Part shown: piece after piece, positions 29,531 to 59,632 of the stretch
Layout: every line of letters begins with the position of its first letter
Position numbering within the stretch: the stretch's first letter is position 1
NCBI GenBank assembly: GCA_002189035.1
Contig: NEEC01000021.1
Span: 62,001-126,000, forward strand
Direction of reading: 5' to 3'
DNA from: Utricularia gibba
Taxonomy: Eukaryota > Plantae > Magnoliophyta
DNA length: 64,000 nt
Notes under the pieces: model-generated
Databases searched by the model: none
What the model saw: only the letters and a program-made list of their open reading frames with translations
What the model was told of the DNA's origin: nothing
Made by a program: the position numbers and the translations under genes

Positions 29531-31343
29531 CGAACATTGACCAAAACTTGATAATTTGCCAATGTTACCTCTTATTTAGACACAATGGAAACCTGGGGTC
29601 CATTAAAGAATCAACTTACAAAGCATATTAGATCTATCATGTATGAAAGTTGCGACTAGATAGGTCATAACAGAAGACCATGTTCTAAACCTTTTAAAAT
29701 GAAAGTCTCTAAAAATGCACAATAACATGAAAAAACTGTTGAAGCAGCACATGAAGGTGGACAACAATATGAACAAATTTCCTAAATAGTCAAAATGTTG
29801 GTGAAAGATGAAAAATAAGTAGATGAAGAGGTCAAAGTTTCACAATGCAATGATGACAAGCATAGTGATTGTCAATTATTATGCATCAATACGTATTCCA
29901 AGTCACATCAAATTTTTCTGATTTTTTCCAATGATGATTGTCATGGACCCCAATACCCATGACTCTAATCATAAGTTGGGACTGTTAAGCGAACAGTAGA
30001 ACACAACCATACACGGTCAAGAAAATGACAATCTTGTAAATCCAGAATCACAAGTATAAGATTCAGCCATCAAAAAGGATATTGTTTACACTAGAAGATT
30101 ATTAGGCAGAACATTATGAATTCTTTATATATCAATTATACTTTGTTGACGTGTTTCATATTTTTCTAAGAAAATCATAGCAATAAATCAAGCATTAATA
30201 TTAGAGAAAGTATCCTTTGTAGATGTGTTTTGGTTCCAAAATGTAATTACATACAAATTTGATGAATTTAATTGGTGCAACAAACATCAATCAATGATCA
30301 ATGCATACTTGTTTATATCGAATGTGGTGAAAACTGTACAAATTGATAAAAATAAAATAAGATTACTGCTTTATGTAATTTTCCAATACCATAAATAACT
30401 CTCATCTTATAAACCTTGATTTTGTTAATTCAAGAAAATCCACAATCATGAAAGACCTTCCTATTCTTGTAGTACGCACAGACCGATTATCAGAATGATT
30501 TACTTCCAGAAATAATCAACAAGAATGCATCTTCAGAAAAGGAAAAAAGCAGAACAGAAGAGAAAAACAAACTCACTTGGTGACATTGGAGAAGGGGGTA
30601 CAGAACATGAAAAAAACGAATTGATCCGAAGTGGTGGGAGGCTGGGGACAGGCTTCGCAAGCCACAAAACTAATTCTAGAAATACATATTAAATAAAATT
30701 TCTGTCAAGTTGTGCCTCTCTAATATCTTTACTCTGAATAGTACTAATATAAATAAAGGAAATAACGTAGTAATATCGAATTTACAACGATAGAAAAAGC
30801 TTTTTAAATAAGTCAATTCATTTATTATAGCAGCTCGTGTGTTAGTTGACCATCCTTACCTTATCTCTCACACACTATGTTACATTTTAACATTGAGGGT
30901 GACCACTTTTCTTACTCAGTAATATGATAGTAGCCAGATTTCTAAATCACCCGAACAAGGGGTGATATTGAGCATGTTTCCTATTTCTTCTCGAAAAACC
31001 AAAGTTGTTGAAACCTTACCAATCCACTCAGGATTTATTAATTTTTAATGCCTATTTTTTAAGGATGAAAAAAGCCACCATTAATGCGAACTAAACAAGA
31101 AATTGAGGTAACGTGGTAGACTTTGGGATCAGTTTGTACTTAAAAAGTAATTAAAATAATGACACAAATAAAAGCTTCTAGAAATATTGCGAAAAAAAGC
31201 TAAAAGAATGAAAAAGGCATAGGTAGTCGTAATCGTTTATTGTTCTGGAACAGAGATTATTTTAATTGAATGATAGAGTAGATATATTACTCTAAATCCT
31301 GATCAAAGATAAAAAAATGTGGTTGATCTGGAATACCGATCTT

Positions 31344-34300
31344 TGATAGCATACAAATTTTCATGTTTTTAGGATATGAAAATCATGAGTTTTTAATTAT
31401 ATTTAGTTGTTTATTTTACAGTTTTAAGTATTTTTATATATAACTTAGGAAAATGTGATTTTTGGTGTATTAGTGGGCTAAATCCTGATTTAGCCCACCC
31501 ATGTTCTAACCCAATTTTGAGCCTAGCAGATACCCGAAAATTAGGGAAAAGTCAAGGATTTTGTGTAAGCTACCGCACAATAGGAGGCAATGGATACACT
31601 GTCCAGACAACAGTCTGCAAGTCAAGAGCAGGAGCAGTGGAACTGTCAAAGAATGTACCTGCCTTGGGTAGTGGGAGGCGAGAGAAAGTGAGAGGAGAGA
31701 GAGTCACAAGACAACAACACGTTTTTAAGAACTAGAAATTGAGAGAGCTATCAGCAAGAACAGGATAAGAGTTAGGGAAGCGAGCAGATTGAGGTAGCTC
31801 CCACCCGAGACTAGCAACAATTTCAAAATGGATGAACCTGAGAAGACCTTGAACGAATTGGATGCTGTTGATCATACTTACAGGGGTATGTGCATCAGAT
31901 TTCCAGAGGATGTAGCAAATGAACTGAAGCCGGCGATGATAAATTTGTTGCCCAAATTATATGGAAAAATTGGAGAAAATCCCCATGAGCATCTAGACAA
32001 TGTAACAGCAGTATGCACATCATTCAAGGGAGCTGGAATGACTGAATATTCAATTTGTTTGAGAGCCTTCCAGTTTACTTTGGAAGGAGGAGCCAAAACA
32101 TGGTTCAACTCACTAAGACCTGGAAGTATAACCGATTGGGCTGGAATGAAGAAGGTGTTTTTGAGGAAGTATTTTCAAGCTTCCAAGGCTGAAGGTATTA
32201 GAAAAGAAATCAGTAATATTGAACAAATGAGTGGAGAATCATTGCATGAATATTGGGAAAGAGTTAATTATCTTTTGGTCTCCTGTCCACACCATGGTTT
32301 TCAGACCAATGCCTTGGTCAAGTATTTCTATGATAGATTGTTATGCACTGACCGAGCCATAGTAGATTCAGCGGCGGGAGGATTTCTAAGGAAAAAGACA
32401 CCAACCGAAGCTCTTTCTTTGCTTGAGGAGTTGGCTGAGCATTCAAGACATATTATTAGGAAGCAAGCCTCAAATAAGAGGGTGTATGAAGTGGAGAGCA
32501 AGCCCAGGATTTCAGAGAATGAACTCACAAAAAATGTTGCTGCTTTGTCAGAAATGATGAAGGAGCTGTTGTTATTCCAAGCTAAGAACATGTCGTGCGG
32601 AAACTGTCACAGAACAAGGCATGTTGCGGAAAAGTGCTCAGATTTATTTGAAGAAAAGCATGTCAAGGCTATGGGATACTTGGATCCCCAGGAAGGGAAG
32701 AAATATGATCCATATTCTAATACTTACAACCCAGGCTGGAGGGATCACCCAAATTTTCGTTGGACCAACAACGAAAATTCTTACAAAGGGAAGAGTTCAA
32801 CCATGGAGCAGCAAAATTTTCAGGAGCAAAGATCTTATCGGGCGCCTGCATTTAGAAGTCAAAACCAACAAAACCCACAGCCATTTCAAGCCCCAAATCA
32901 AGGCAATGCTAGGAGAAATTCTGGAAATTTGTTGGAAGAAATGTTGAAGACATTCATGACGCAATCAACGAAGAATCAAGCTGAAAATCAACAAGCAATC
33001 CGGAATTTGGAGGTTCAAGTGAATCAGTTGGCAGCAAAGCCTGGAGACCTGAAACAGAAAGGGAGTTTACCATCTCAACCCAAGGCAAACCCAAATTCTA
33101 GTGGAGGATCGAACATTAGCACCATGACACTTACGAGTGGAAAAAAGAAACCTAAACGAGAACTAGTCCAGTTTGAGACTAAGGAGAATGAGATAGAGGA
33201 GTATGAAGTTGTTGTGCAAAGTGAGGACAAAATTGAAGTACTCCTTGAACCTGTCACGGTGAAGGTGACCTAGCCTCCTTTTCCAGGAAGGCTGAAACTG
33301 AAGGATGAGAAAACCCAGAAAGAGAAAATGTTAAAGGCATTGGGAAACACTCAATTGAATTTAACTCTCTTGGAGTATATTGATCTTGTGCCAAAGAGTG
33401 TTAAATATTTGAAACAGCTATGCATGTCTAAACCCAAGCTGAAAGAGAAGGGTAAGGTGAAATTGAGTGAAAGCTGCTCAGCATTTTTGACATGGAAACT
33501 ACCCGAGAAGCGCAAAGATCCGGGTACATTTTTTATCCCATGCAAAATAGGAGATTTGTGCATCAGGAGAGCCATGGCAGACCTGGGAGCTTCTATAAAT
33601 GTCATGTCAAATTCTGTTTATGAGTCACTTAGGTTGAGATCTTTGCAAGCATCGGGTGTACAAATTGAGTTAGCGGATAGGAGAGTGATTTCTCCCAAAG
33701 GTTTGGTAAAGGACGTTTTGGTGAAGATTGAGCATCTTGTATTCCCACCTGATTTTTATGTGGTTAACATGCCCACTAGAGGATCAAAGGACACGACAAT
33801 CATCTTGGGAAGACCCTTCTTGAGCACTTCAAATGCCATCATCAACGTGAAAATGGGAACTATTGAGCTTTCTTTTGATGACGACAAAATTACACTGGAC
33901 ATGAAGGATGTGAAGAATTATCCCAGTGATTTTGAGAGCATTTGTGTTGTAGATATCATGGATGGACTAATTGATGAGCACTTGAAGAAAGAAATTCAAT
34001 AAAAAGAAGAGGCTCATGAAGAATCTTTATTTGCAAAATTTGAAGCTGAAGAAAAATTCGAGCAATTAAATGTGGTGCAAGCCAAGACTCAAGAAGAGAG
34101 GTTAGCTGAATTGAAATCGTTGCCTAACCATTTAAAATATGTTTTTCTTGATGCAGAGTTCAGGAACCCGGTTACCATCTCCACTGGTTTAAGCTTAGAT
34201 CAAGAGTCGCAACTGCTCGAGGTCCTCAACAGAAACAAGAAGGCAATAGGTTGGATGCTGGATGGCATTGAGGGGATCTGCCCATCCATATGTATGCACA

Positions 34301-34841
34301 AAATATTTTTGGAGGATGGTGCAAATACAGCTCGTCAACCTCAAAGACACCTCAACCCAAACATGATGGAGGTGGTAAGAAAAGAAATTGTTAAACTCCA
34401 TGATGCAGGAATTATTTACTCTATCACACATAGTAAATGGGTGAGCCCCATTCACGTGGTGCCAAAGAAGACAGGGATGACTGTGGTAGAAAATGAGAAA
34501 GTCGAGCTTGTTCCACAAAGAGTGCAAAATGGATGGCGGGTTTGCATTGATTGAAAATTAAATGAAGTGACAAAGAAAGACCATTATCCTTTGCCCTTTA
34601 TTGATCATATGTTGGAAAAATTGGTTGGAAAATCATTTTATTGTTTTTTGAATGGATACTCTATATATAATCAGGTTCCTATTTCAGGGCAAGACTAAAG
34701 GATTTAGCCCACTAACACATCAAAAATCACATTTTCCTAAATTATATATAAAAATAATTAAAACTATAAAATAAACAACTAAATATAATTAAAAACTCAT
34801 GATTTTTATATCCTAAAAACATGAAAATTTGTGTGCTATCA
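31344..34841 (+). mobile_element. Rearranged Athila-type gypsy element: LTR head (31344-~31735), gag-protease-partial RT (31828-34698), inverted LTR head (34699-34841)
   Basis: The internal region is closely similar to the full element at 48634-59632. Termini are TGATAGC... and ...GCTATCA, forming 143-bp inverted arms with 7 mismatches by my count. TSD ATCTT at 31339-31343 and 34842-34846. Confidence 0.9.
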
Positions 34842-35029
34842 ATCTTTCATATTCCAATGATTGGATGAACCTAGAAAACCCCCACAAGAATTTCTGATCG
34901 TTCCATCATTTGTTTATAGTGTGGTGAGCATGGAAATACCACGATACTCACAATGATGGTAGAGAATGGCGATACTACGTCACTAATCAAAATGTTGGTT
35001 GCTGGTATTGAGATGGACAGAGTGGGTCT

Positions 35030-37520
35030 CATGCATCTAAGCGGCTTCGATCATCCCAATGCCTCACTTGTAAGTGAGTTACTCACTACACAGAACTACT
35101 TTGATTGACAGTGGGGAATGCATCTTGCATTAGGATCAAAGAATAAGTAAGGTATCATCTATCGTGCATTTCTAAGCCTCTGCAGACTGATCCAACTTAT
35201 AATCTTTGGATGAGAAACGACTTTATGGTGATGTCATGGCTGATAATCTCTATTTCTAAGGATCTCGTGTCGAGTTTTACTGTTTTAATGAGCATGCCCC
35301 CAGTATATCATCACCTGCATGTGTTTGGTTTTTTAGTGTATGTTGCTAATATCTATACTAGAAGTGATAAGCTAGCCCCTCGGACCTAGAAGTGTAGTTT
35401 ATTGGGATATCCAATGGATCATAAAGGGTATAAATTGTATGATATGCATACTAAGGACATTTTCATATCAAGGGATGTAAAATTCTTGGAGCATGTGTAC
35501 CTCTTGAAAGGTACTTCCATAGATTTAGACTCTTTGGATGTCTTGTTGGCTTTACTCTTCCCGGAATCTGATGATGCCTTGATGGTGATGACGTGTTCCC
35601 TAGAGTTAATGGCACATGTGTTGATCCCACCGATCCAAATTACTCCCACAGTGGCAACCTCCCACATGATCCACTTGTTGGGGATGTGACAATAGGGATC
35701 TCGTTCTAGTGCCAATGTAAGGCCTACAGTTGCAGAGTGTCCTATTGTTGATATTGACGATGTAAGGTCTCAACTTTTGAGGTGTCCTACTGCTAGCATC
35801 GATCAAGCAGCATGATATTCTGATACTCAACAGAAGTCTTTTAAGAGTGGCTTTCTTCAATACAGTTCTCGTGCTCGATTCACTCCTGTTTTGATGGAGG
35901 ATTATTATATCTATCAGGTTAATATTTCACAATCTGAGAAACCTCCTTTGATGCAAGAACAGAGAAATTATTAAGAGGCCAACCGATACTCTTATTGGTG
36001 TGAGGCAGTGGAATAGGAACTACATGCTTTGGAGCAGAACCGCACATGGGAGCTTCTGAAATTACCCTCTGGAAAATGAGCCATTGGTTGTAATTGGATA
36101 TATAACATCAAGAAGCTATCTAATACACAGTTGGAATGATACAAGTGTCGTTTTGTGGCAAAGGGATATTAACAGATTGTACTAGTTGATTTTCATGATA
36201 GTTTCGCACTAGTTGCTAAGGTCACAACTATCTGGCTTCTCTTAGATTTAACATCAAAGCATCATTGGCATTCTCATCAAGTTGGCATCAATAATGATTT
36301 CTTCATGGCTATTTGGATGAGGAGATCTCTATGCAACCACCGGAAGGATTCTCTTGTAGACTAGTCGAAGTGGGTGTTTGTTGAAAAGATCCATGTATGG
36401 TCTTAAGCAAGCGTCGTGGCAATGGAATGTCGAAAACACTAAGTTTAGGTTTCGCTCAAGCCTCATCTAATCCCTGGTCTGGTTTTCTAGCTTTTTTGAT
36501 GTATGTTGATGATATTCTTATCGTTGGATTATCTACTTTGGACATTATGGATCTAAAGAGAGCCCTCGATGCTAAGTTTACGATCAAAGATCTTGGTGAA
36601 GCCAAGTTCTTCTTAGGGGTTGAAACCTCACAAACTGTACTTGGCCTCTACTTGCCTCAACATAGATATCTATCTGGCATCTTAGACAATTTAGATCACA
36701 CTACCTTACGGTTGGTAGACACTCCATTCTGTCACGGCTATATATTCTCTGATGGCCCTTCTGAGCCAATCTTCATTGATGAGTATCGAACATTAATTGG
36801 GAAATTGCTTAATTTTGGCTTCACTTGTCCGGATATATCCTTTGTGGTTCAAAACTCTCTCAATATGTGCATTTACCAAGAACTGAGCAGTGATTAGTCC
36901 TGCGACGCCACCTCTCATTGGTTATCTCTTTGCTACCTCCTGTTTTAGGTTATTTTATCCTTATGGGGGCACCCCTTACATTGAAGTCTACTGTGATGCG
37001 GATTGCGGTGCCTGCCACAATACCTGCCATTCTGTTACCGGATTTTGCATTTTTCTTGGAGTATGTTTGGTTTCATGGAAGACCAAGAAGCATAAAACCA
37101 TGCCACGTTTTTCTACAAAGGCTGAATATCACAGTATGGCAGCTAAAACTGCAAAGCTCTTATGGTTGTCTTATGTTATGAAGGATCTCATGGAGGAGGT
37201 GCACACACCGATTCCTTTGTAGTGTGTTAGCCAATCGGCTATTCATATTACAGCTAGTCCTGTTTTCAACAAATGCACGAAGTATATTGATATTGACTGT
37301 CATGTGGTGCGAGATCAGTATAAAAAATGTTTCCTTTCCCCCTTGTTTGTGCCTTCCTAGGAGTAATTGATTCTGTGCCCCTCCATACCCTTGTCTCCAA
37401 GCTTGGGTTGCATTTCATGCCACACCAGCTTGAACAGGGGATAAAGACAGAGTATGATACGCAGTCCACTCCTGATATCAAACACCATGGTACCATGGGT
37501 GTACCAGTGTAGGAGCTACA
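35030..37520 (+). mobile_element. Decayed, internally deleted Ty1/copia element: gag start, integrase end, RT, RNase H
   Basis: DHPNASLVSELLTTQNY...ALGSKNK (gag); LGYPMDHKGYKLYD...ISRDVKF (integrase); YVDDILI and KDLGEAKFFLG (RT); YCDADCGAC...SVTGFCIFLG..LVSWKTKK...STKAEY (RNase H). Confidence 0.88.
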
Positions 37521-48633: not shown

Positions 48634-49801
48634 TGATAGCACACAAATTTTCAGGTTTTAGGATATGAAATATCATGAATTTTTAATCTTTTTTAAAGGT
48701 TTATTTTATAGTTTTAAGTGTTTTTATGAAATTTAGGAAAATGTAATTTTTGGTGTGATTAGCAGACTAAATCGTTTGATTTAGCCCACCCCATATCTAA
48801 CCCGATTTTGGAGTCTAGGAGCAACTCAAGAATCAAGGAAGAGATCTGAATTTCGTGCAAGTCACCAAGCTGCAAGAGACAAAGAGCACTGTTCCGCCGC
48901 CTGCAATCTGCAGGTTCAGGCCGAGAACAGTGATGGTGTCAGGAACAATGCGTGGGAGTAAATGAGGGAAGATATTATTTTCGAAAAGGGAGAGCGGGAA
49001 AAAGAGAACACACAGCGAGGGGGACGCAGGGGGTCTTCTTCCCCAACGGGAGAAACACCAACCAGAGCGGGGAAGGGAGGCCTTCATCATCAAGAACAGC
49101 ACCGGAGCACAGTCCAGCACTACTGTTCCGAGCTGTGAAAAGTAGCCAGCGGGCGGAAAAACAATATCTATTTGCTTTCCGTTTTTCTGAACATTTCAAG
49201 TTTCTGCATTTGACTTGTTACAATGTTTCTGCCATTTTGGCCAGCTTATATGAATGAAATCGTGTTTTATTTCCAAAGCATGAGTGGCTAGAGTCTTAGG
49301 AATGCCTTAAGGTGAAGGGGTGTGGTGTGTGCTTAGGGTTAATGATGAAATTTATGTGTATTCCTTAACTCTTGTTTCTAGCAAACTATGGGTAGACCTA
49401 AGGAGGGAAACAAGTAATTTCACAACTTAGAAGCTTGGTTTAGAGGTAGACCAACAAACCAAGATGCGAGCAATCGGTGTTAGTGCAGGGTAGAACCAGT
49501 AGAACCGGGTAGACTTAGTTCTATATACCTTGCATGTGGGTAGACCTAATTGCAATGTTGGTTATGATATTAGGGACTGGCTTAAGCCAAAAATATGATG
49601 AATGACCTGGGTAGACCTAGGTTATTCGAAGTTGTGAGTGTAGGAAGATAGCAAATTAATTTAGGAACCTTAGTATGGCACCACCCGCAGATCTTTAAGG
49701 CGTCCACGTATTAGTGTGAGTCAAAACCAGTACCTGTTACCCTAGCGTCAAGACGTGATATTCATAATATTGCAACGATATTAGGAAATTCCTGTTTATC
49801 A
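48634..49801 (+). repeat. 5' LTR (1168 bp; ~0.2 kb shorter than the 3' LTR)
   Basis: Direct repeat of 58258-59632; about 7 mismatches in the first ~270 bp by manual comparison. Confidence 0.93.
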
Positions 49802-49804
49802 AAT

Positions 49805-49822
49805 TGGCGCCGTTGCCGGGGA
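49805..49822 (+). promoter_or_regulatory. Primer-binding site
   Basis: TGGCGCCGTTGCCGGGGA, 3 nt after the LTR end; this is the PBS characteristic of Athila elements. Confidence 0.9.
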
Positions 49823-49991
49823 GCGGTGTTTAATTGTTTTGTGTTTATAGTTGACGCATTTACGTTCTCCTGGTGCAGGTAATATTACTTTCCTTCCAGA
49901 AATTGAGAGAGTTATCAGCAAGAACAGGGTAAGAGTTAGAGAAGCGAGTAGATTGAGAAAACTCTCACCTGAGACTAACAGAAATTTCAGA

Positions 49992-52900
49992 ATGGCTGAA
50001 CCTGAGAAGACCTTGAAGGAATTGGATGCTGCTGATCATACTTAAAGTGGTCTGTGCATCAGATTTCCAGACGATGGAGCAAATGAGCTAAAGCTGGCGA
50101 TGATAAATTTTTTGCCAAAGTTCTATGGAAAAATTGGAGAGAACCCCATGAGCATTTAGACAATGTAACAGCGGTATGCACATCATTCAAGGGAGCTGGA
50201 ATGATTGAAGATTCCATTTGTTTAAGAGCCTTCCAATTTACTTTGGAAGGAGGAGCCAAAACGTGGTTCAACTCACTAAGACTTGTAAGAATAACCGATT
50301 GGGCTGGAATGAAGAAGGTATTTTTGAGTAAATATTTTCCAACTTCCAAGGCTGAAGGTATTAGAAAAGAAATCAGTGATGTTGAACAAATGAGTGGAGA
50401 ATCATTGAACGAATATTGGGAAAGATTCAACCATCTTTTGGGATCCTACCCACACCATGGTTTTCAAACCAATGCTTTGGTCAAATACTTCTATGATGGA
50501 TTATTATGCACTGACCAAGCCATGGTAGATTCAGCGGTGGGAGGATTTCTAAGAAAAAAGACACCAACCGAAGCTCTTTCTTTGCTTGAGGAGTTGGCTG
50601 AGCATTAAAGACATATTATCAGGAAGCAAACCTCAAACAAAAGGATGTATGAAGTGGAGAGCAAGCCCAGGGTTTCAGAGAATGAACTCACAAAAAATGT
50701 TGCTGCTATGTCAGAAATGATGAAGGAGTTGTTCTTATTCCAGGCTAAGAACATGCCGTGTGGAAACTGTCACAGAATTGGGCATGTTGCGGACAAGTGC
50801 TCGGATTTATTTGAAGAGGAGCATGTCAAGGCTATGGGATACTTGGAACCCCAGCAAAGGAAGAAATATGACCTTTATTCAAATACTTACAACCCAGGCT
50901 GGAGGGATCATCCAAATTTTTGTTGGAGCAATAACGAAAATTCTTATAAAGGAGAAACCTCAACCATGGGGCAGCAGAATTTTCAGGAGCAGAAATCTTA
51001 TCAGGTTCCTCTATTTCGAAGGCAAAACCAACAGAACCAGCAGCCATTCCAAGCCTCAAATCAAAGCAATGCTGGAGGGAATTCTGGAAATTCATTGGAG
51101 GAGATGTTGAAGACCTTCATGCCGCAATCAATAAAAAATCAAGCTGAAAATCAACAAGCAATCCGGAATTTGGAGGTTCAAGTGAGTCAGTTGGCAGTAG
51201 AGTTTGGAGACTTGAAGCAGAAAGGAAGTTTGCCATCTCAACCCAAGCCAAACCCAAATTCCAGTGGAGGGCCGAACATCAGCGCCATGACACTTCGGAG
51301 TGGAAAAGAGAAGCCTGGACGAGAACTAGTCCAGCTTGAGACTAAGGAGAACGAAACAGAGGAGTACGAAGTTGTTGTACAGAGTGAGGATGAAGTTGAG
51401 GTACTTCCAGAACCTGTCACGGTGAAGGTGACCCAGCCTCCTTTTCCAGGAGGCTGAAGCCGAAAGAAGAGCAAACCGAAAAAGAAAAAATGTTGAAGGC
51501 ATTGGGAACACCCAATTGAATTTAACTCTCTTGGAGTGTATTGATCTTGTTCCCAAGAGTGTTAAATTTTTGAAACAGCTGTATATGTCCAAACCGAAGA
51601 TGAAAGAGAAGGGGAAGGTCAAATTGAGTGAAAGCTGCTCAACACTTCTCACATGGAAACTACCCGAAAAGCGTAAGGATCCGGGTACATTCTTTATCCC
51701 ATGCAAAATAAGAGATTTGTGCATCAGGAGAGCTACGACAGACCTAGGAGCTTCTATAAATGTCATGTCAAATTCTATTTATGAGGCACTTAGGTTGGAC
51801 CTTTGCAAGCATCGGGTGTGCAAATTGAGTTAGTAGATAGGAGAGTGATTTCTCCCAAGGGCCTAGTAGAGGACGTTCTAGTGAAGATAGAGCATTTGGT
51901 GTTCCCAGCTGATTTTTATGTGGTCAAAATGCCCACTGGAGGATCAAAGGACACGACAATTATTTTAGGGAGACCATTCTTGAGCACCTCAAATGCTATC
52001 ATCAATGTGAAGATGGGAACCATTGAGCTTTCTTTTGATGAAGACAAAATCACACTGGACATGAAGGATGTGAAGAATTATCCCAGTGATTTTGAAAGCA
52101 TTTGTGTTGTAGATGTTATGGATGGACTTATTGAGGAGCACTTGAAGAAAGAAATTCAAGAAAAAGAAGTGGCTCATGAAGAATCTTTATTTGCAAAATT
52201 GGAAGCTGAAGAAAAATTCGAGCAATTAAATGTGGTGCAAGCCAAGACTCAGGAAGAGAGGTTAGCTGAATTGAAACCATTGCCTAATCATTTAAAATAT
52301 GTTTTTCTTGATACAGAGTTCAGGAACCCTGTTATCATCTCCATTGGTCTGAGCTTAGACCAAGAGTCGCGACTGCTCGAGGTCCTGAACAGAAACAAGA
52401 AGGCAATAGGTTGGACGCTGGATGACATTGAGGGGATCTGCCCATTCATATGCATGCACATAATTTTCCTAGAGGATGGTGCAAAACCAATTCGTCAACC
52501 TCAAAGACGCCTCAACCCAAACATAATGGAGGTGGTAAGAAAAGAAATTGTTAAACTCCATGATGCAGGAATTATTTACTCTATCACAGATAGTGAATGG
52601 GTGAGCCCCATTCACGTGGTGCCTAAGAAGACATGGATGACTGTGTTGGAGAATGAGAAAGGCGAGCTTGTTTCACAAAGGGTGCAAAATGGATGGCGCA
52701 TTTGTATTGATTATCGAAAATTAAATGAAGTGACAAAGAAAGACCATTATCCTTTGCCCTTTATTGATCAGATGTTGGAAAAATTGGCTGGAAAATCGTT
52801 TTATTGTTTTTTGGATGGATACTCTAGATATAATCAGGTTCCTATTTTAGGGCAGGACCAAGACAAGACAACCTTCACATGTTCATTTGGAACTTATGCT

Positions 52901-55173
52901 TATAAGAGGATGCCTTTCGGATTGTGTAACACCCCAGCTACATTTTAGAGGTGTATGATCAGTATTTTCTCGAATTTTGGTGATGATTTTATTGAAATAT
53001 TTATGGATCATTTTACGGTATATGGAGAAAATTTTGAGTAATGTTTAGACCATTTAGATCAGGTTTTGAAGAAATGTGTTGAAAAAAATCTAGTTTTAAA
53101 TTCTGAAAAATGCCATTTTATGGTGGATAATGGAATTGTTTTAGGCCATGTGATTTCTAAAAAAGGGATTGAGGTAGATAAGGCAAAAATTGAGATTATG
53201 TATGAACTTCCTTATCCAATTGATATGAAAGGTATTAGATCATTTTTAGGACATGTTGGCTTTTATAGGAGGTTTATTAAGAATTTTTTGAAAATTGCCT
53301 TACCTCTTAGTAAGTTGTTGCATAATGATGTTGCCTTTGATTTTGATAATTCATGTAAGCAAGCTTTTAATTCTTTGAAAAAGGCTGTTACTACTGCACC
53401 TGTGATGCAACCACCTGATTGGAAATATGATTTTGAGATCATGTGTGATGCAAGTAATCATGGTGTGGGTGCTGTTTTGGGGCAGAAAATTGAAGGAAAG
53501 CACCATGTTCTCTCTTATGCTTCGAAAACCTTACATGAGCCCCAGAAAAATTATACCATCACTGAAAGGGAATTTCTTGCTGTTATTTTTGCCTTGGAAA
53601 AATTTCGTTCTTATCTTTTAGGTAGCAAGGTGGTGGTATACACTGATCATTCGGTGGTGAAGCACTTGATGGAGAAGAAGGACTCCAAACCAAGACTTAT
53701 TAGATGGGTCCTTCTTGTCCAGGAGTTTGATGTTGAGATAAAGGACAGGCCTGGACGGGAGAACCTTGTGGCTGATCACCTCAGCAGGATTGAAGGAAGT
53801 GAAGAAGATGGAATCATCACTGAAACGTTTCTGGACGAACAACTATTCTCAGTTCGGACCAATATACGTGAACCATGGTTTGCTGATCTTGCAAATTTTG
53901 TTTCAACAATGGTGATGCCACCTGGAATGGACTATCATGCAAGGAACGAGCTTAAGAGTAATGCCAAATACTACATATGGGATGATCCATATTTATGGAA
54001 GAGATGCAATGATGGCGTCATTAGGTGTGTTCATGAAAATAAAATTCTAAAAATAATTGATTCTTGTCATGCAGGACGTTTTGGTAGCCATCATGGACCA
54101 AATAGAATAGCAAGAAAAATTCTAGATTGCGGATTTTATTGGCCACATATTTTCAGAGATTGCTATGCCTATTGCAAAGGGTGTGAACCATGCCAAAGGG
54201 TAGTAAATTTGTCAAACCAAAACGAAATGCCCCAGCAAGGAATCCTGGTATGTGAATTATTTGATGCATGGGGTATAGATTTTATTGGACCATTTCCTAC
54301 TTCAGCATGTTACAATTACATTTTGGTTGTGGTTGATTATGTGTCCAAATGGATTGAGGCAATCCCTACATGGACTGATGATGCAAAGACTGTGATTAAT
54401 TTCTTGCGCAACAACATCTTCACGAGATATGGAACTCCTAAGGCGCTGATCAGTGATAGGGGAACACATTTTTACAATCAGGTCTTGAGGAGTGTTTTGA
54501 AGCATTTCAATGTTTGGTACAAGCCTTCTACAGCGTACCATCCCCAAATCAATGGACAAACCGAAGTATCTAATAGGGAAATCAAACAAATTCTAGAGAA
54601 AGTTGTGAACCCAAGCAAGAAGGACTGGAGCATGAGATTGAAAGATGCACTTTGGGCTATACAGACAGCATACAAGACCCCCATTGGAACCTCACCATTT
54701 CGGTTGGTCTATGGGAAGCTTTGCAGATTACCAGCAGCTCTTGAGGATAAGCATGGTGGGCTGTGAAGAATTTGAATTTGGATAGGAACCTTAGTGCAAG
54801 TCACAGGAAGCTCCAACTTTCAGAACTAGAAGAGTTGAGAAATGATGCGTATGAGAGCTCAAAACTATTCAAGGCTCGGACTAAGAGTTATCATGACGCG
54901 CATATCTCCAGGAGAAATTTTGAGATTGGCCAGAAAGTTTTATTATTTCAATCCAAGTTGAAATTGCATCCTGGAAAGCTGAAATCAAGATGGATACGGC
55001 CTTTTATTGTGAAGGAAATTTTTCCAAATGGAGTAGTGGAAATATTTGATAGAGACTCAAACAAGGGATTTTTGGTAAATGGCCATAGATTAAAATTATT
55101 TTTTGAAAATGTGGATAACCTGTTCACAAGAAATTTGGAGATGGTCAAGCTGATGGATGCTCCAGAAACGTAG
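49992..55173 (+). pseudogene. Athila gag-pol (gag, protease, RT, RNase H, integrase), broken by stops and frameshifts
   Basis: YNPGWRDHPNF (gag); DLGASINVM (protease); WRICIDYRKLN and LDGYSRYNQ (RT); [12 protein letters not shown] (RNase H); HHGP...[13 protein letters not shown] and [14 protein letters not shown] (integrase). Confidence 0.93.
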
Positions 55174-55510
55174 CCACACGAGAAGTCGGGTCCAAGACTA
55201 TAAACAAGGGCGTTTGTGGGAGGCAACCCATGGTTAAGTTTTTAATTTCAGAATTTCAATTTTAGTTTAATGTTGTTATTTTAGAATTTTTATCTGTATT
55301 TTGTGCTACTGGGAAATTAATTTTTAGTGTTAAGAGGAGTTATTGATGGGGAGTTACGAAAATCAGACCGTTGAGATGAGTGGGAAGTTGAATTGGAGAG
55401 AAATGACAAAAATGCCCTTCTTGCCTAAAATTAGTTGGAAGATCAGTTACTGTTCTTCACTTCACCCATTTGTCTGCGATTTTTCTGCGAAAAATTACAG
55501 CTGTAGAAAC

Positions 55511-57352
55511 ATGGTGCCGGCGACGAGAAGCACAAAGAAAGCCGCAAAAGAGAAGACTGGCCGGAAAAAGACGAGAAAGGAGCAAGTGAAGGAAGGAACA
55601 AGAGATGCTGAAGCACCCACCACTGTTGCTCCGACCCAGGAAGAAGTAGTTCAGCCTGCTGCGGTCACCGTAGAGAATCCTCAAGAAGTGGACGTGATCC
55701 CCCAGACAGCGGAGGTTGAGGAGTCCTCCAAACAGAAAAAACGGAAGGACCCATCTTCCAAGTCAGAGCACATCAGCCTTCAGCAACGATTGACGGACAT
55801 GAAGAGAAAAACTCCAGCAGAAGAACCACCTGTAGAGCTGTAGGTCTTGCCTAAGAAGAAGGAGAAGAAACATAGAACGAAAAAGCATAAGGGACTGCGG
55901 GAGGAACCTGTGCTGGAGAAAGAATCTGCTGAACTAGAAAAACAAGTGCTGCCCGCTGTAGAGAAAAATGTTGAAATTTCCAGAAATGAAGAAGAGGCAG
56001 CAGAAGAGGAGCCCGAGGCTGAAAATGAAATTCTGGAAAAGTCTCAGGAGGAGGCTGGAGATAAAAATGAAACAGGACATGAACAGGGAGCAGACGAACA
56101 GGGTGAGCAACCACTAGTCCGAGGCCAGAAGGAGCAGGGAAGTCTACCTACAGAAACTGCTGCAAGCACAACAGAAGAAAAGTAGGAAGGGATGGAGAAG
56201 GTAAAGAAATTTCTCCCAAAATTAGTCCCTATGTTCATGAATGTAGGGAGATTCACAATGGAAAGCGATTTCAATGGCAAATGACTAGGAAGGGAATTCC
56301 TTATTTTAAGCTACATGCTGATATGTTAAACGAGAAATACCCTAATACATGGACAGGTATGGAGAGGTAAAAGGTGCCAAGGTATTACCCTGCCGTCATA
56401 TTGATTTCGAGATCCTTATTGAGTTAAACCTAGTGGATAAGGTTTACACCATGTTTGAGAATTCTGCCTTCATGACTTTATTTGAGTTAAAGCTCTCTGC
56501 TTATGTGGAACTATCATATGAATTTGCTTCGACTTTAACTTAAAAAATTCCAGAAACTGTTTTGGAACCTGCTGCTTTTTGCTTTCGTATGATGGGCACT
56601 GAGTTTTCATTTTCCTTAGCTGAGTGGAATGTTGCCCTTGGTTTTTTCTCGAAAAAGCAAGTAGATTTGCATGATTTTGCTGCTTCTTTATTCGATTATC
56701 CAGCAGACTTTGATGCTGAAGAATTTTATGGGATTTTAACTGATCAGCATGTCATTGAGTTTAAGGCAAAGGGAACGAAATCTGAGCTGTTTGTTGAACC
56801 ATTCATGCGTTATGTTCATATGTTAGTCACTACAACTCTTTTAGAAAAAAATATTGGATTTAATGCTCTTTATAAACGTGAACTATTTGTGTTGTGGTGC
56901 ATTATGATTAAGCGATCTCTGAACTTAGGTGCAATGCTTGCTGAGCAAATGAATAGAGATTATAGGCATACTAAAATTCAACAACTCAGTTTCGGTCATA
57001 TTTTTACGCATCTTATTAATACTTTGTGTCCAGAAAAGCTGTCCCAACTTGAATTCTTCCATGTTCAGACTAAGACAGTGTCATTGGATGCGTATTCATT
57101 AAAAGTTGCTGGACTAATCAAAGCCCAAGGAAGTGGGTTTGTTTTAGATCTTTGGCAGGACTAGAAAGAAGATTCATCCCAAGAAAGAAGAAAGAAGACA
57201 CTACTGCTCCATCAACCTCAACTCCAGCTCTAGGAGAGAAACGTTGGTGCTGCCCAGAAATCTTGGAGGTGATGAGCGACAAATTTTCAGATTTGATTAG
57301 GGTGATCTTAGAGTTAAAACAGGGAGTGGCCGATGCCTCCCTAAACAAGTAA
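55511..57352 (+). pseudogene. Athila env-like / extra ORF after pol, with several in-frame stops
   Basis: A Lys/Glu-rich N-terminal region is followed by RHIDFEIL...YVELSYEFASTL...FRMMGTEFSFSLAEWNVALG, in the position and style of Athila ORF3. Confidence 0.7.
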
Positions 57353-58257
57353 CATGTTGCTAGAACGATTTAGTATAGTAGGTCTTTATTTTTGTTTTGT
57401 TTTATTTTCATGATTAGGATTATGTTTACGTCAAAGGATGCTATCTATTAGTCTAAGTCTAGACTTAGAGGTGTGTTTAACATTGGTCTTGCTGAGTAGT
57501 AGTAAACTGTTTCCGATGGCTACATTATAGCTGCTAGATGAATTTTGTTGCATGAGTTTTGTAGACCTTTTTGATACCCGTGAGCATGTTTTTATCTTTT
57601 TATTTTATGAGAGCATGTGCATGACCCGAGGAATCTAAGAAGTATGCTCTAGATCATTTTTATATGAATTGTTGAATTTCATAGTCATTGTGGAACAAGT
57701 TGCCAACCACGAAAAAAGAAAGAGGTGAATAAAGGGTCTGAAAAGAAAAAGGAAAAAAAATTGAGACCCAAGTCCTAAAAAACAGCACATATTAAAAGAT
57801 CATGTGCAGACTCAATAAATAGTGAAAGGGTGAGTGGGGATAGACTAATCTAGAGGAGTATGAAAGAGCCTGGTGTTATAAGGTGTGAGTGTTTGGCCAA
57901 CACTCAGGAAAAAGAAAAGGCAATCACATTATGCCTGGATTAGTCTGGAACAAGCTACCCCTTCACTACACAAAAAAAAAAAGAAAAAAAAAAGAGAAAA
58001 AATGGGTTGGCAACCATGACCTTAAGTGACTTTGAAGGGATCAATTCTATGAGGTATGATCTTCGAAAACACTCCTCAAGAGGAATCTACTCATGCACAT
58101 TTGAGTGATGAAATGACATGCACACTTGCACTTCTTTAGCTCATGCACCGAAATTTATTTTCAGTTGTTTATGTTTATCGCTGATGCTGAAGGAACTAGT
58201 TTTCTGTTAGTCTTAGGTGGGACTTGGGGACAAGTCTGGTGTCGTTGTAGCATAATG

Positions 58258-59632
58258 TGATAGCACACAAATTTTCAGGTTTTAGGATATGAAAGATCAT
58301 GAATTTTTAATCTTTATTAAAGGTTTATTTTATACTTTTAAGTGTTTTTATGAAATTTAGGAAAATGTAATTTTTGGTGTGATTAGCAGACTAAATCATT
58401 TGATTTAGCCCACCCCATATCTAACCCGATTTTGGAGTCTAGGAGCAACTCAAGAATCAAAGAAGAGATCTGAATTTCGTGCAAGTCACCAAGCTGCAAG
58501 AGACAAAGAGCACTGTTCCGCCGCCTGCAGTTTGCAGGTTCAGGCCGAGAACAGTGATGGTGTCAGGAACAATGCGTGGGAGTAAATGAGGGAAGATATT
58601 ATTTTCGAAAAGGGAGAGCGGGAAAAAGAGAACACATAGCGAGGGGACGCAGGGGGTCTTCTTCCCCAACGGGAGAAACACCAACCAGAGGGGGGAAGGG
58701 AGGCCTTCATCATCAAGAACAGCACCGGAGCCCAGTCCAGTACTACTGTTCTGGGCTATGAACAGTAGCTAGCGGGCGGAAAAACAATATCTATTTGCTT
58801 TCCGTTTTTCTGAATATTTCAAGTTTCTGCATTTGACTTGTCACAATGTTTCTGCCATTTTGGCCAGCTTATATGAATGAAATCGTGTTTTATTTCCAAA
58901 GCATAAGTGGCTAGAGTCTTAGGGATGCCTTAAGGTGAAGGGGTGTGGTGTGTGCTTAGGGTTAATGATGAAATTTATGTGTATTCCTTAACTCTTGTTT
59001 CTAACAAACCATGGGTAGACCTAAGGAGGCAAACAAGTAGTTTCACAACATAGAAGCTTGGTTTAGAGGTAGACCAACAAACCAAGACAGGAGCAGTCGG
59101 TGTTAGTCCAGGGTAGAACCAGTAGAACCAGGTAGACCTAGTTCTATATACCTTGCATGCGGGTAGACCTAATTGCAATGTTGGTTATGATATTGGAGAC
59201 TAGCTTAAGCCAAAAATATGATGAATGACCTAGGTAGACCTAGGTTATTCGAAGTTGTGAGTGTAGGAAGATAGCAAATTAAGTTAGGAACCTTAGTATG
59301 ACACCACCTGCAGATCCTTAAGGTGTCCACGTATTAATGTGAGTCAAAACTAGTACCTGTTACCCTAGCGTCAAGACGTGATATTGCTTACCTACTTTTT
59401 TTTACTAAACTTGTTTACCACTGTTAGTCTGAGCTTTGACTAAGACCTATTGTTATCCCGAATTATGCATTTACTAGAACACTTAGCAAGCACAAGCTCT
59501 TCGTGACCGACCCCGACATCCACTATACAAGTTTTCTAAATTTGTATTTTGTGTAGATTAGAGAGTATAAATTTATTTGATACGGATTTTCTATTTTTAT
59601 TTGCAACAATATTAGGAAATTCATGTTTATCA
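58258..59632 (+). repeat. 3' LTR (1375 bp)
   Basis: Direct repeat of the 5' LTR, followed directly by the TSD GTGGG. Confidence 0.93.

Follow-up and report, generated by a model that had tools for sequence, protein, structure and literature searches.

A retrotransposon insertion in Utricularia gibba with an inverted LTR head at each end and one perfect 5-bp target-site duplication

Here we describe a derivative of an Athila-type long terminal repeat (LTR) retrotransposon from Utricularia gibba in which the head of the LTR forms both ends of the inserted DNA. This element, hereafter the focal block, occupies positions 31344-34841 of the 64-kb stretch that was analyzed (assembly GCA_002189035.1, contig NEEC01000021.1, positions 62,001-126,000 of the forward strand; hereafter the window, to which all coordinates refer). 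The window is plant DNA rich in transposable elements, and the focal block lies in it within a perfect 5-bp target-site duplication (TSD). A complete Athila-type element in the same window, at 48634-59632, serves as the reference element. We consider it probable that the focal block arose by integrase insertion of DNA with two LTR-head termini, whether these were supplied by one complementary DNA (cDNA) or by two. The more specific proposal, that a single integrase-made insertion placed an abnormal linear cDNA with an LTR head at both ends, produced with strand switching at a hairpin, has in our estimation about an even chance of being correct. A like-ended integrase reaction explains both ends in one step and is the most economical explanation.

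Repeat finding in the region and in the whole window returned one outstanding inverted repeat (31329-31486 versus 34699-34856), and BLAST together with base-by-base alignment confined its element-derived arms to 31344-31486 and 34699-34841. The arms are 143 bp long and identical at 136 of the 143 positions (95.1%; 7 differences), and both match the 5' LTR end of the reference element (48634..., 58258...) at ~79-84% (BLAST). Both termini of the focal block are the 5' end of the LTR, not one U3 and one U5 end; they retain the TG...CA form (TGATAGC.../...GCTATCA), with ATCTT directly repeated on each side. The short read contigs used here come from four public runs with the same species label and were placed on 30600-35600; in them, other copies of the family leave for unrelated sequence just before 31344 and just behind 34841. 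The two inverted LTR heads, the 143-bp arms and the perfect ATCTT duplication that an earlier note on this DNA had described were thus reproduced by repeat finding, BLAST and alignment. The right arm was also considered as the U5 end of a normal subfamily LTR with a 143-bp terminal inverted repeat, an option that was rejected because the related LTR ends quite differently.

Between the arms, gag, protease and reverse transcriptase (RT) follow in Ty3/gypsy order, the first two recognized by Pfam at 31828-33270 and 33274-33999 and the start of RT by its 90% identity to the reference element. BLAST aligns the interior (31734-34698) collinearly to 49898-52861 of the reference element, at 89.8% identity, and no other rearrangement is present. 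RT breaks off at 34695, ~58 residues into the RVT_1 domain as judged by homology to the reference open reading frame (ORF) 51803-52945, in which RVT_1 starts at residue 295. In-frame stops are located directly after the protease stretch (34000-34002) and in the RT part (34552-34554). The focal block and the reference element part ways after ...GAC, and the AA of the junction letters TAA could, to judge from the letters, correspond to two loop T's carried by most other copies. The focal block has no U5 end, primer-binding site (PBS), RNase H, integrase or polypurine tract, the Athila PBS TGGCGCCGTTGCC being found only at 49805. Both the gag-protease-partial RT content and these absences had been listed in the earlier note and were recovered by BLAST, Pfam and pattern search. 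No transposase was detected in the focal block by Pfam. A single LTR is present in direct orientation and it is partial, the other terminus consisting of 143 bp of inverted LTR head. The left LTR fragment (31344-31733) aligns to positions 1 to ~317 of the 1168-bp reference LTR at ~72%, and the whole of it is high-copy in the read contigs at an identity of at least 90%, which indicates genuine family LTR sequence of a diverged subfamily. The family itself is abundant, since read depth is 100-2000 in the element interior versus 4-21 in the flanks. A gag protein search retrieved no close family copies, the best database relatives being gag proteins of other eudicots at ~40% identity, and an exact-pattern search for the LTR start in metagenome contigs gave zero matches.

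The family can be assigned through the reference element, which contains RVT_1, RNase H and integrase domains (Pfam), has an LTR pair that is 96% identical, and shows at its 5' junction the order TATCA-AAT-TGGCGCCGTTGCC (49797-49817). An LTR end in TATCA, an AT-rich spacer of 3-6 nt and the PBS TGGCGCCGTTGCC form the signature of the ATHILA lineage (ATHILAfinder preprint, 10.64898/2026.03.20.713144), and their presence in the reference element identifies the family as Athila-type Ty3/gypsy. The stretch that carries this signature is missing from the focal block, which also has no pair of direct LTRs; the focal block is therefore a derivative of the ATHILA lineage, not an intact member. The normal LTR ends of the family share the inverted pentamer TGATA/TATCA, known as the Athila terminal pentamer (10.64898/2026.03.20.713144), and this makes like-ended integration chemically unremarkable here.

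Because the ends of the focal block are fixed in advance by the LTR termini, the 5/5 match of the flanking pentamers would arise by chance with a probability of ~0.0016 at this base composition. The duplication is direct and perfect, and its length equals that of the GTGGG duplication of the reference element. A contig from runs X1/X2, present at single-copy depth, connects 31317 with 34860 through 27 other letters; compared with the element-removed window, it is a recognizable but indel-rich relative of the site, and the flank contigs of these runs are otherwise identical to the window. As the flanks are joined in this contig, the whole block is an insertion at a single point, with no host DNA missing. 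The flanks are degenerate copia-derived DNA, and the flank-joining contig is therefore likely to represent a paralog or else the other haplotype. Reading an unduplicated target from it was rejected, as its 27 letters are too diverged, and it demonstrates adjacency only. Of the empty site with a single ATCTT that the earlier note had envisaged, the adjoining flanks were accordingly recovered, and the 5-mer was not. Taken together, termini fixed by the LTR, a direct perfect duplication and adjacent flanks mean that the two LTR heads must flank a single 5-bp staggered cut.

These constraints bear on a history of two successive insertions in opposite orientation at the same 5-bp target, followed by a deletion that began in the RT of the first copy and extended to position 143 of the second. 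The family is present at high depth (100-2000 in the element versus 4-21 in the flanks), illegitimate deletions are common in plant LTR elements, and 95% identity between the arms is compatible with different source copies. Against this, the scheme demands base-exact reuse of one genomic target and a deletion that spared both outer ends and left no trace of a middle TSD. Furthermore, with the flanks adjacent in the empty relative, the two insertion points cannot differ even by a few bases, and we regard this history as highly improbable.

The target is symmetric (TGGAATA-CCG-ATCTT-TCA-TATTCCA), with the duplicated 5-mer exactly at its center, and the related empty contig from X1/X2 is without the right half of this arrangement. 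In a post hoc test, a symmetric 7-mer at the same offset was found at 0.2% of random window points. This arrangement may be due to chance or to the two-fold symmetry with which targets are captured. An inverted repeat running into the flanks, as expected from an inverted duplication of host DNA, was rejected: only the 7-mer matches outside the TSD, and gapped flank similarity is not above chance. The right flank at 34990-37222 is a degenerate Ty1/copia remnant, with a gag_3-like motif near 35000, an integrase C-terminal SH3-like domain at 35402-35686 and RVT_2 at 36397-36894, so that the focal block sits in older transposon debris. In the left flank, depth in run X5 rises to ~1575 over 30934-31100, against ~20 around it, marking a small high-copy repeat that lies ~250 bp before the insertion; near 30963-30999 the X5 contigs depart from the window sequence.

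The junctions are also present in short-read contigs from independent runs of two studies. Run X5 represents a diverged accession or haplotype whose flanks differ from the window by ~3%. One of its contigs (record 25) crosses the left outer junction (30918-31382, with 39 nt inside and 426 nt outside), and two others carry the inner RT/arm junction 34698/34699 with at least 35 nt on each side, the arm being placed on the left copy. These two can be alleles, or the orthologous locus with an arm that kept ancestral letters, and are not proof of several loci. Only 25 nt of sequence cross the right outer junction, in an X5 contig at 34817-35600 (record 32) and in an X3 contig at 34817-35174 (record 24, zero differences). 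The presence of the junctions in independent short-read contigs makes misassembly unlikely and implies that the structure predates the divergence of these samples. An assembly artefact, namely a chimeric join of high-copy repeat reads, would draw on the strong repetition of the element and on the known occurrence of inverted joins in long reads. It is largely refuted by the contigs that contain the inner and left outer junctions and 25 nt across the right outer one, and we find it scarcely credible; misassembly had been named in the earlier note as what could undo the structure, and these contigs contradict it.

The inner end of the inverted arm falls in the loop of a hairpin at 31473-31498. 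As single-stranded DNA this sequence forms a stem of 11 bp closed by a 4-nt loop (free energy -10.9 kcal/mol, z -5.4, matched by 0 of 200 shuffles) and is the strongest hairpin of the LTR; the inverted arm comprises the 5' half of the stem and the loop, beyond which RT sequence begins. A random breakpoint in ~400 bp would land at most 3 nt from the loop with a chance of ~1.5%. The reference LTRs contain a weaker 7-bp hairpin at the equivalent place (48764-48787 and 58388-58411). The stem is preceded, at a distance of ~30 nt, by a TATA-like motif (31435-31443). Were this motif the promoter, the hairpin would stand at the very start of R and the arm would consist of U3 plus ~20 nt of R. The description of the termini as U3 ends in the earlier note is thus exact as regards the LTR 5' ends and approximate as a label. 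Read contigs show that most other family copies have two more T at 31485; the right arm could be of this kind as well, which places the switch point at LTR position 143-145; the 143 bp of the right arm hold in the alignment, and the arm may reach position ~145. Among the best-supported loose ends of the read contigs, no recurrent sequence is joined to the inner end of the arm, a further reason against taking the right arm for a U5 end. Other LTR copies in the runs appear to have short tandem duplications (~62 bp and ~40 bp) of the TATA-hairpin region 31437-31498. Read joints 31498/34748 and 31422/34802 were rejected as further inversions; the preferred interpretation is that LTRs of other copies, with short tandem duplications, were placed across both arms.

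A normal full-length insertion might have been altered later by template switching or fold-back repair that replaced the part from RT to the 3' LTR with the inverted first 143 bp, the TGATA/TATCA microhomology keeping the TSD intact. Hairpin-mediated fold-back inversions are well documented (for example, PMC7467729), the breakpoint lies in a hairpin loop, and the LTR ends do share a 5-nt inverted pentamer. This route, which we judge very unlikely, would need an outer breakpoint exact on the last base of the element on one side and on its first base on the other, and the 5-nt microhomology is one of an estimated ~1e5 such pairs within 10 kb. Simple fold-back priming would also have copied the left flank in inverted form, yet the right flank matches that inverted form at only 9 of 15 letters, versus 95% in the arms, and the duplication is direct.

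Within the integrase explanation, the position of the breakpoint in the hairpin favors an error of reverse transcription; it fits a stall at 143 nt, as had been suggested in the earlier note, and supplies a physical cause for it. Starting from the anatomy, hairpin, direct duplication, read support and flank adjacency observed at this locus, we propose that plus-strand DNA would initiate at the normal priming site, copy the first 143-145 nt of the LTR and halt in the hairpin loop. Its 3' end would then be re-extended on a plus-sense template within the RT region, with synthesis running back through protease, gag and the leader, and the strand would be completed by copying the head of another plus-strand DNA to the 5' end of that strand. 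When the complementary strand had reached both ends, the molecule would be blunt, with TGATAGC... at each end. Integrase would accept both pentamer ends and make its usual 5-bp staggered cut, here at ATCTT. The order of the strand switches is inferred, and the LTR-to-leader jump may or may not belong to the same event. With no PBS, plus-strand primer site, RNase H or integrase, the product would have been dead on arrival.

Two cDNAs held in one integrase complex could each have given an LTR head, their inner ends, one from a break in RT and the other from a break in the hairpin 143 nt in, being joined by host end-joining. Such a reaction would leave the same outer anatomy, i.e., exact head termini, a direct 5-bp TSD and adjacent flanks. 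End joining typically leaves an inner junction such as this one, with 0-3 ambiguous letters (TAA); nucleases would naturally attack a hairpin loop; and in vitro concerted integration commonly uses two donor molecules. The cost is a chromosome break bridged by two long cDNA tails and the trimming of ~6.8 kb plus most of the second cDNA. We consider this version unlikely, while nothing in the sequence distinguishes it from the one-molecule route. The like-ended cDNA integration put forward in the earlier note therefore stands as the most economical account of the exact termini, direct TSD and adjacent flanks, and its one-cDNA and two-cDNA forms are indistinguishable.

The 7 differences between the arms are 6 transitions and 1 transversion, and, polarized against the reference LTRs, 4 derived states fall on the left and 3 on the right; the arms also share subfamily-specific letters against the reference element. 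This even split of mostly transitions fits arms that were identical at insertion. The Kimura two-parameter (K2P) distance is 0.051 between the arms and 0.040 between the reference LTRs, which gives the dating proposed in the earlier note, and at the commonly used plant rates of 7e-9 to 1.3e-8 per site per year the arm distance corresponds to ~2-3.7 million years. The focal copy has decayed since insertion, as seen in the arm distance and in the two in-frame stops of the protease-RT stretch. Its gag frame is open, and selection on it was considered and rejected: an estimated ~1.4 stops are expected in 481 codons at this age, so the openness is not significant.

Several points weigh against a like-ended integration of an aberrant cDNA. 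The case rests on a single locus, a second example not having been retrieved, and the model requires two or three strand switches in addition to like-ended integration, which to our knowledge is known from in vitro work only and from no natural genome. Without the parent sequence, microhomology at the two inner junctions is unscorable. Two loop T's that may be present in the right arm and in most copies are absent from the left arm, so that identity at birth is unproven, and 95% identity is also possible between two unrelated subfamily copies. Finally, the target 5-mer is not conserved in the related empty sequence from X1/X2, where a single ATCTT was not seen.

The remaining junction of the focal block is the jump from the left LTR into the leader at 31733/31734. 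Position 31734 corresponds to 49898 of the reference element, which lies 96 nt beyond the end of the LTR (49801) and ~80 nt beyond the PBS, in keeping with the jump near 31735 into post-PBS leader noticed in the earlier note. A contig from another copy and the reference element both diverge from the focal block exactly at 31734. In the reference element, 49876-49897 reads CAG|GTAATA followed by a pyrimidine tract that ends in CAG exactly at 49897, resembling splice signals, and the family of the reference element might, judging by these letters, have a spliced leader RNA. The jump may be part of the aberrant synthesis, or stem from a spliced template, or be a later deletion. Coordinates of all features are given in Table 1.

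Table 1. Features of the focal block, its target site and the reference element (window coordinates)
Feature	Coordinates	Strand	Basis or remark
TGGAATA, 3 nt outside left TSD	31329..31335	.	mirrors TATTCCA 34850-34856
Left TSD copy ATCTT	31339..31343	.	direct reading
Left arm, LTR positions 1-143, begins TGATAGC	31344..31486	+	95.1% versus reverse complement of 34699-34841
Left LTR fragment, ~390 bp, without remainder of LTR and U5 end	31344..31733	+	alignment to reference LTR
TATA-like motif TATATATAA, LTR positions 92-100	31435..31443	+	direct reading; putative promoter role
Palindrome, 12-nt arms, 2-nt center; 11-bp stem and 4-nt loop when folded	31473..31498	+	DNA fold
Leader, start = 96 nt past LTR end in reference element	31734..31827	+	31734 corresponds to 49898
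gag ORF, 481 aa, no interruption	31828..33273	+	ORF list; Pfam Retrotrans_gag E 7e-19
Protease-containing stretch, frame shared with gag	33274..33999	+	Pfam Asp_protease_2 E 1e-5
Spacer and N-terminal RT part, ends short of catalytic motifs	34003..34695	+	collinear with 52166-52858 of reference element
Junction letters TAA, unassignable with certainty to either side; stop codon in RT frame	34696..34698	+	sequence comparison
Right arm, LTR positions 1-143 inverted, ends GCTATCA	34699..34841	-	repeat finding, BLAST, alignment
Right TSD copy ATCTT	34842..34846	.	direct reading
TATTCCA, 3 nt outside right TSD	34850..34856	.	mirror partner of 31329-31335
Complete Athila-type element; LTRs 48634-49801 and 58258-59632; PBS 49805-49817; TSD GTGGG 48629-33, 59633-37	48634..59632	+	LTR pair, Pfam

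In the reference element, the 3' LTR contains an insert of ~215 bp (59386-59600) that is absent from the 5' LTR and lies ~40 bp before the LTR end. Directly 5' of this LTR lies GTCGTTGTAGCATAATG (58241-58257), which we take to resemble the 5' end of tRNA-Asp. Pairing, with one G-U, is possible between the first 7 letters of this sequence and the acceptor-stem strand implied by the reference PBS, and a purine-rich stretch is located ~20-40 nt upstream of the sequence. The window contains two other inverted repeats. One (13474-14057/18904-19458) has arms of ~580 bp that are 73-83% complementary, encloses ~5 kb and has the shape of a terminal inverted repeat (TIR) transposon; the other (26647-26769/27244-27366) has 123-bp arms (89%) 474 bp apart and the shape of a miniature inverted-repeat transposable element.

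The focal block can be compared with several known systems. With the canonical ATHILA-lineage insertion at 48634-59632 it shares gag, protease, RT, the LTR head (~80-90%), TG...CA termini and a 5-bp TSD; it differs in having no second direct LTR, U5 end, PBS, plus-strand primer site, RNase H or integrase, and in its right end, which is an inverted LTR head. Integration of like-ended donors has been obtained in vitro, both in retroviral concerted-integration assays and with Ty1 artificial transposons bearing U3 termini on both sides. There, as proposed here, integrase joins like ends to a staggered cut with a TSD of normal length, whereas the substrates are engineered for the test tube and ours would be a natural substrate with its product in a plant chromosome. 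Terminal hairpins also cause self-priming and strand-transfer errors in retroviral reverse transcription, for example at the HIV-1 TAR hairpin of strong-stop DNA. There, as proposed here, the 3' end of a growing DNA strand is diverted by a stable hairpin close to where R begins; the retroviral errors concern minus-strand strong-stop DNA and yield dead-end fold-backs, in contrast to the integrated two-head element described here.

Other abnormal insertions share parts of this anatomy. Sabot and Schulman reportedly ascribed, in 2007, complex and chimeric LTR retrotransposons to template switching; these too have an abnormal LTR arrangement within one TSD that is explained by strand switching in the particle, but they carry extra direct LTRs in place of an inverted partial LTR terminus. 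The 5' inversion of LINE-1 arises by twin priming. There, as proposed here, one event gives an internally inverted copy in a single TSD through a second priming during reverse transcription, whereas the process is target-primed and involves a non-LTR element without integrase or LTR ends; an L1 5'-inverted class is mentioned in PMC2912911. TIR DNA transposons have in common with the focal block terminal inverted repeats (143 bp here, 95%) and a short direct TSD. The focal block differs from them in that its repeats are LTR heads and it has no transposase. The likeness to a TIR element pointed out earlier therefore holds for the 143-bp inverted termini and the TSD and is one of shape only, with no sign in the window and read contigs that the product moved again.

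Retroviral and LTR-element integrases join two like ends in the test tube. As far as the literature searched shows, natural chromosomal products of this reaction are apparently undescribed for plant elements; the search found no described LTR element bounded by two inverted LTR heads in a TSD, which is weak evidence of novelty given its thin coverage of subscription journals. The focal copy is without what further reverse transcription requires and has stops in its protease-RT stretch, and no function is indicated for it. The simplest reading is a rare fossil of integrase acting on a mis-made DNA copy with two like ends, and as such it is a curiosity of mechanistic value. That hairpin-guided two-head cDNAs and their integration might form a recurrent side pathway of the Athila families of this genome and a regular source of inverted repeats, with products that have ends recognizable to integrase on both sides and are movable in trans in a cut-and-paste-like manner, seems to us quite unlikely; if true, it would link LTR retrotransposons to integrase-type DNA transposons through a naturally occurring intermediate. 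If the like-ended reading holds, the locus records a plus strand that aborted at a hairpin near the start of R and was re-primed elsewhere, and it would mean that integrase does not check that its two ends differ. The structure also provides a search pattern, head-to-head or tail-to-tail LTR ends in matching 5-mers, by which the frequency of such errors can be counted in any assembled genome. Long inverted repeats, as well as TIR-like elements, could originate by the same route.

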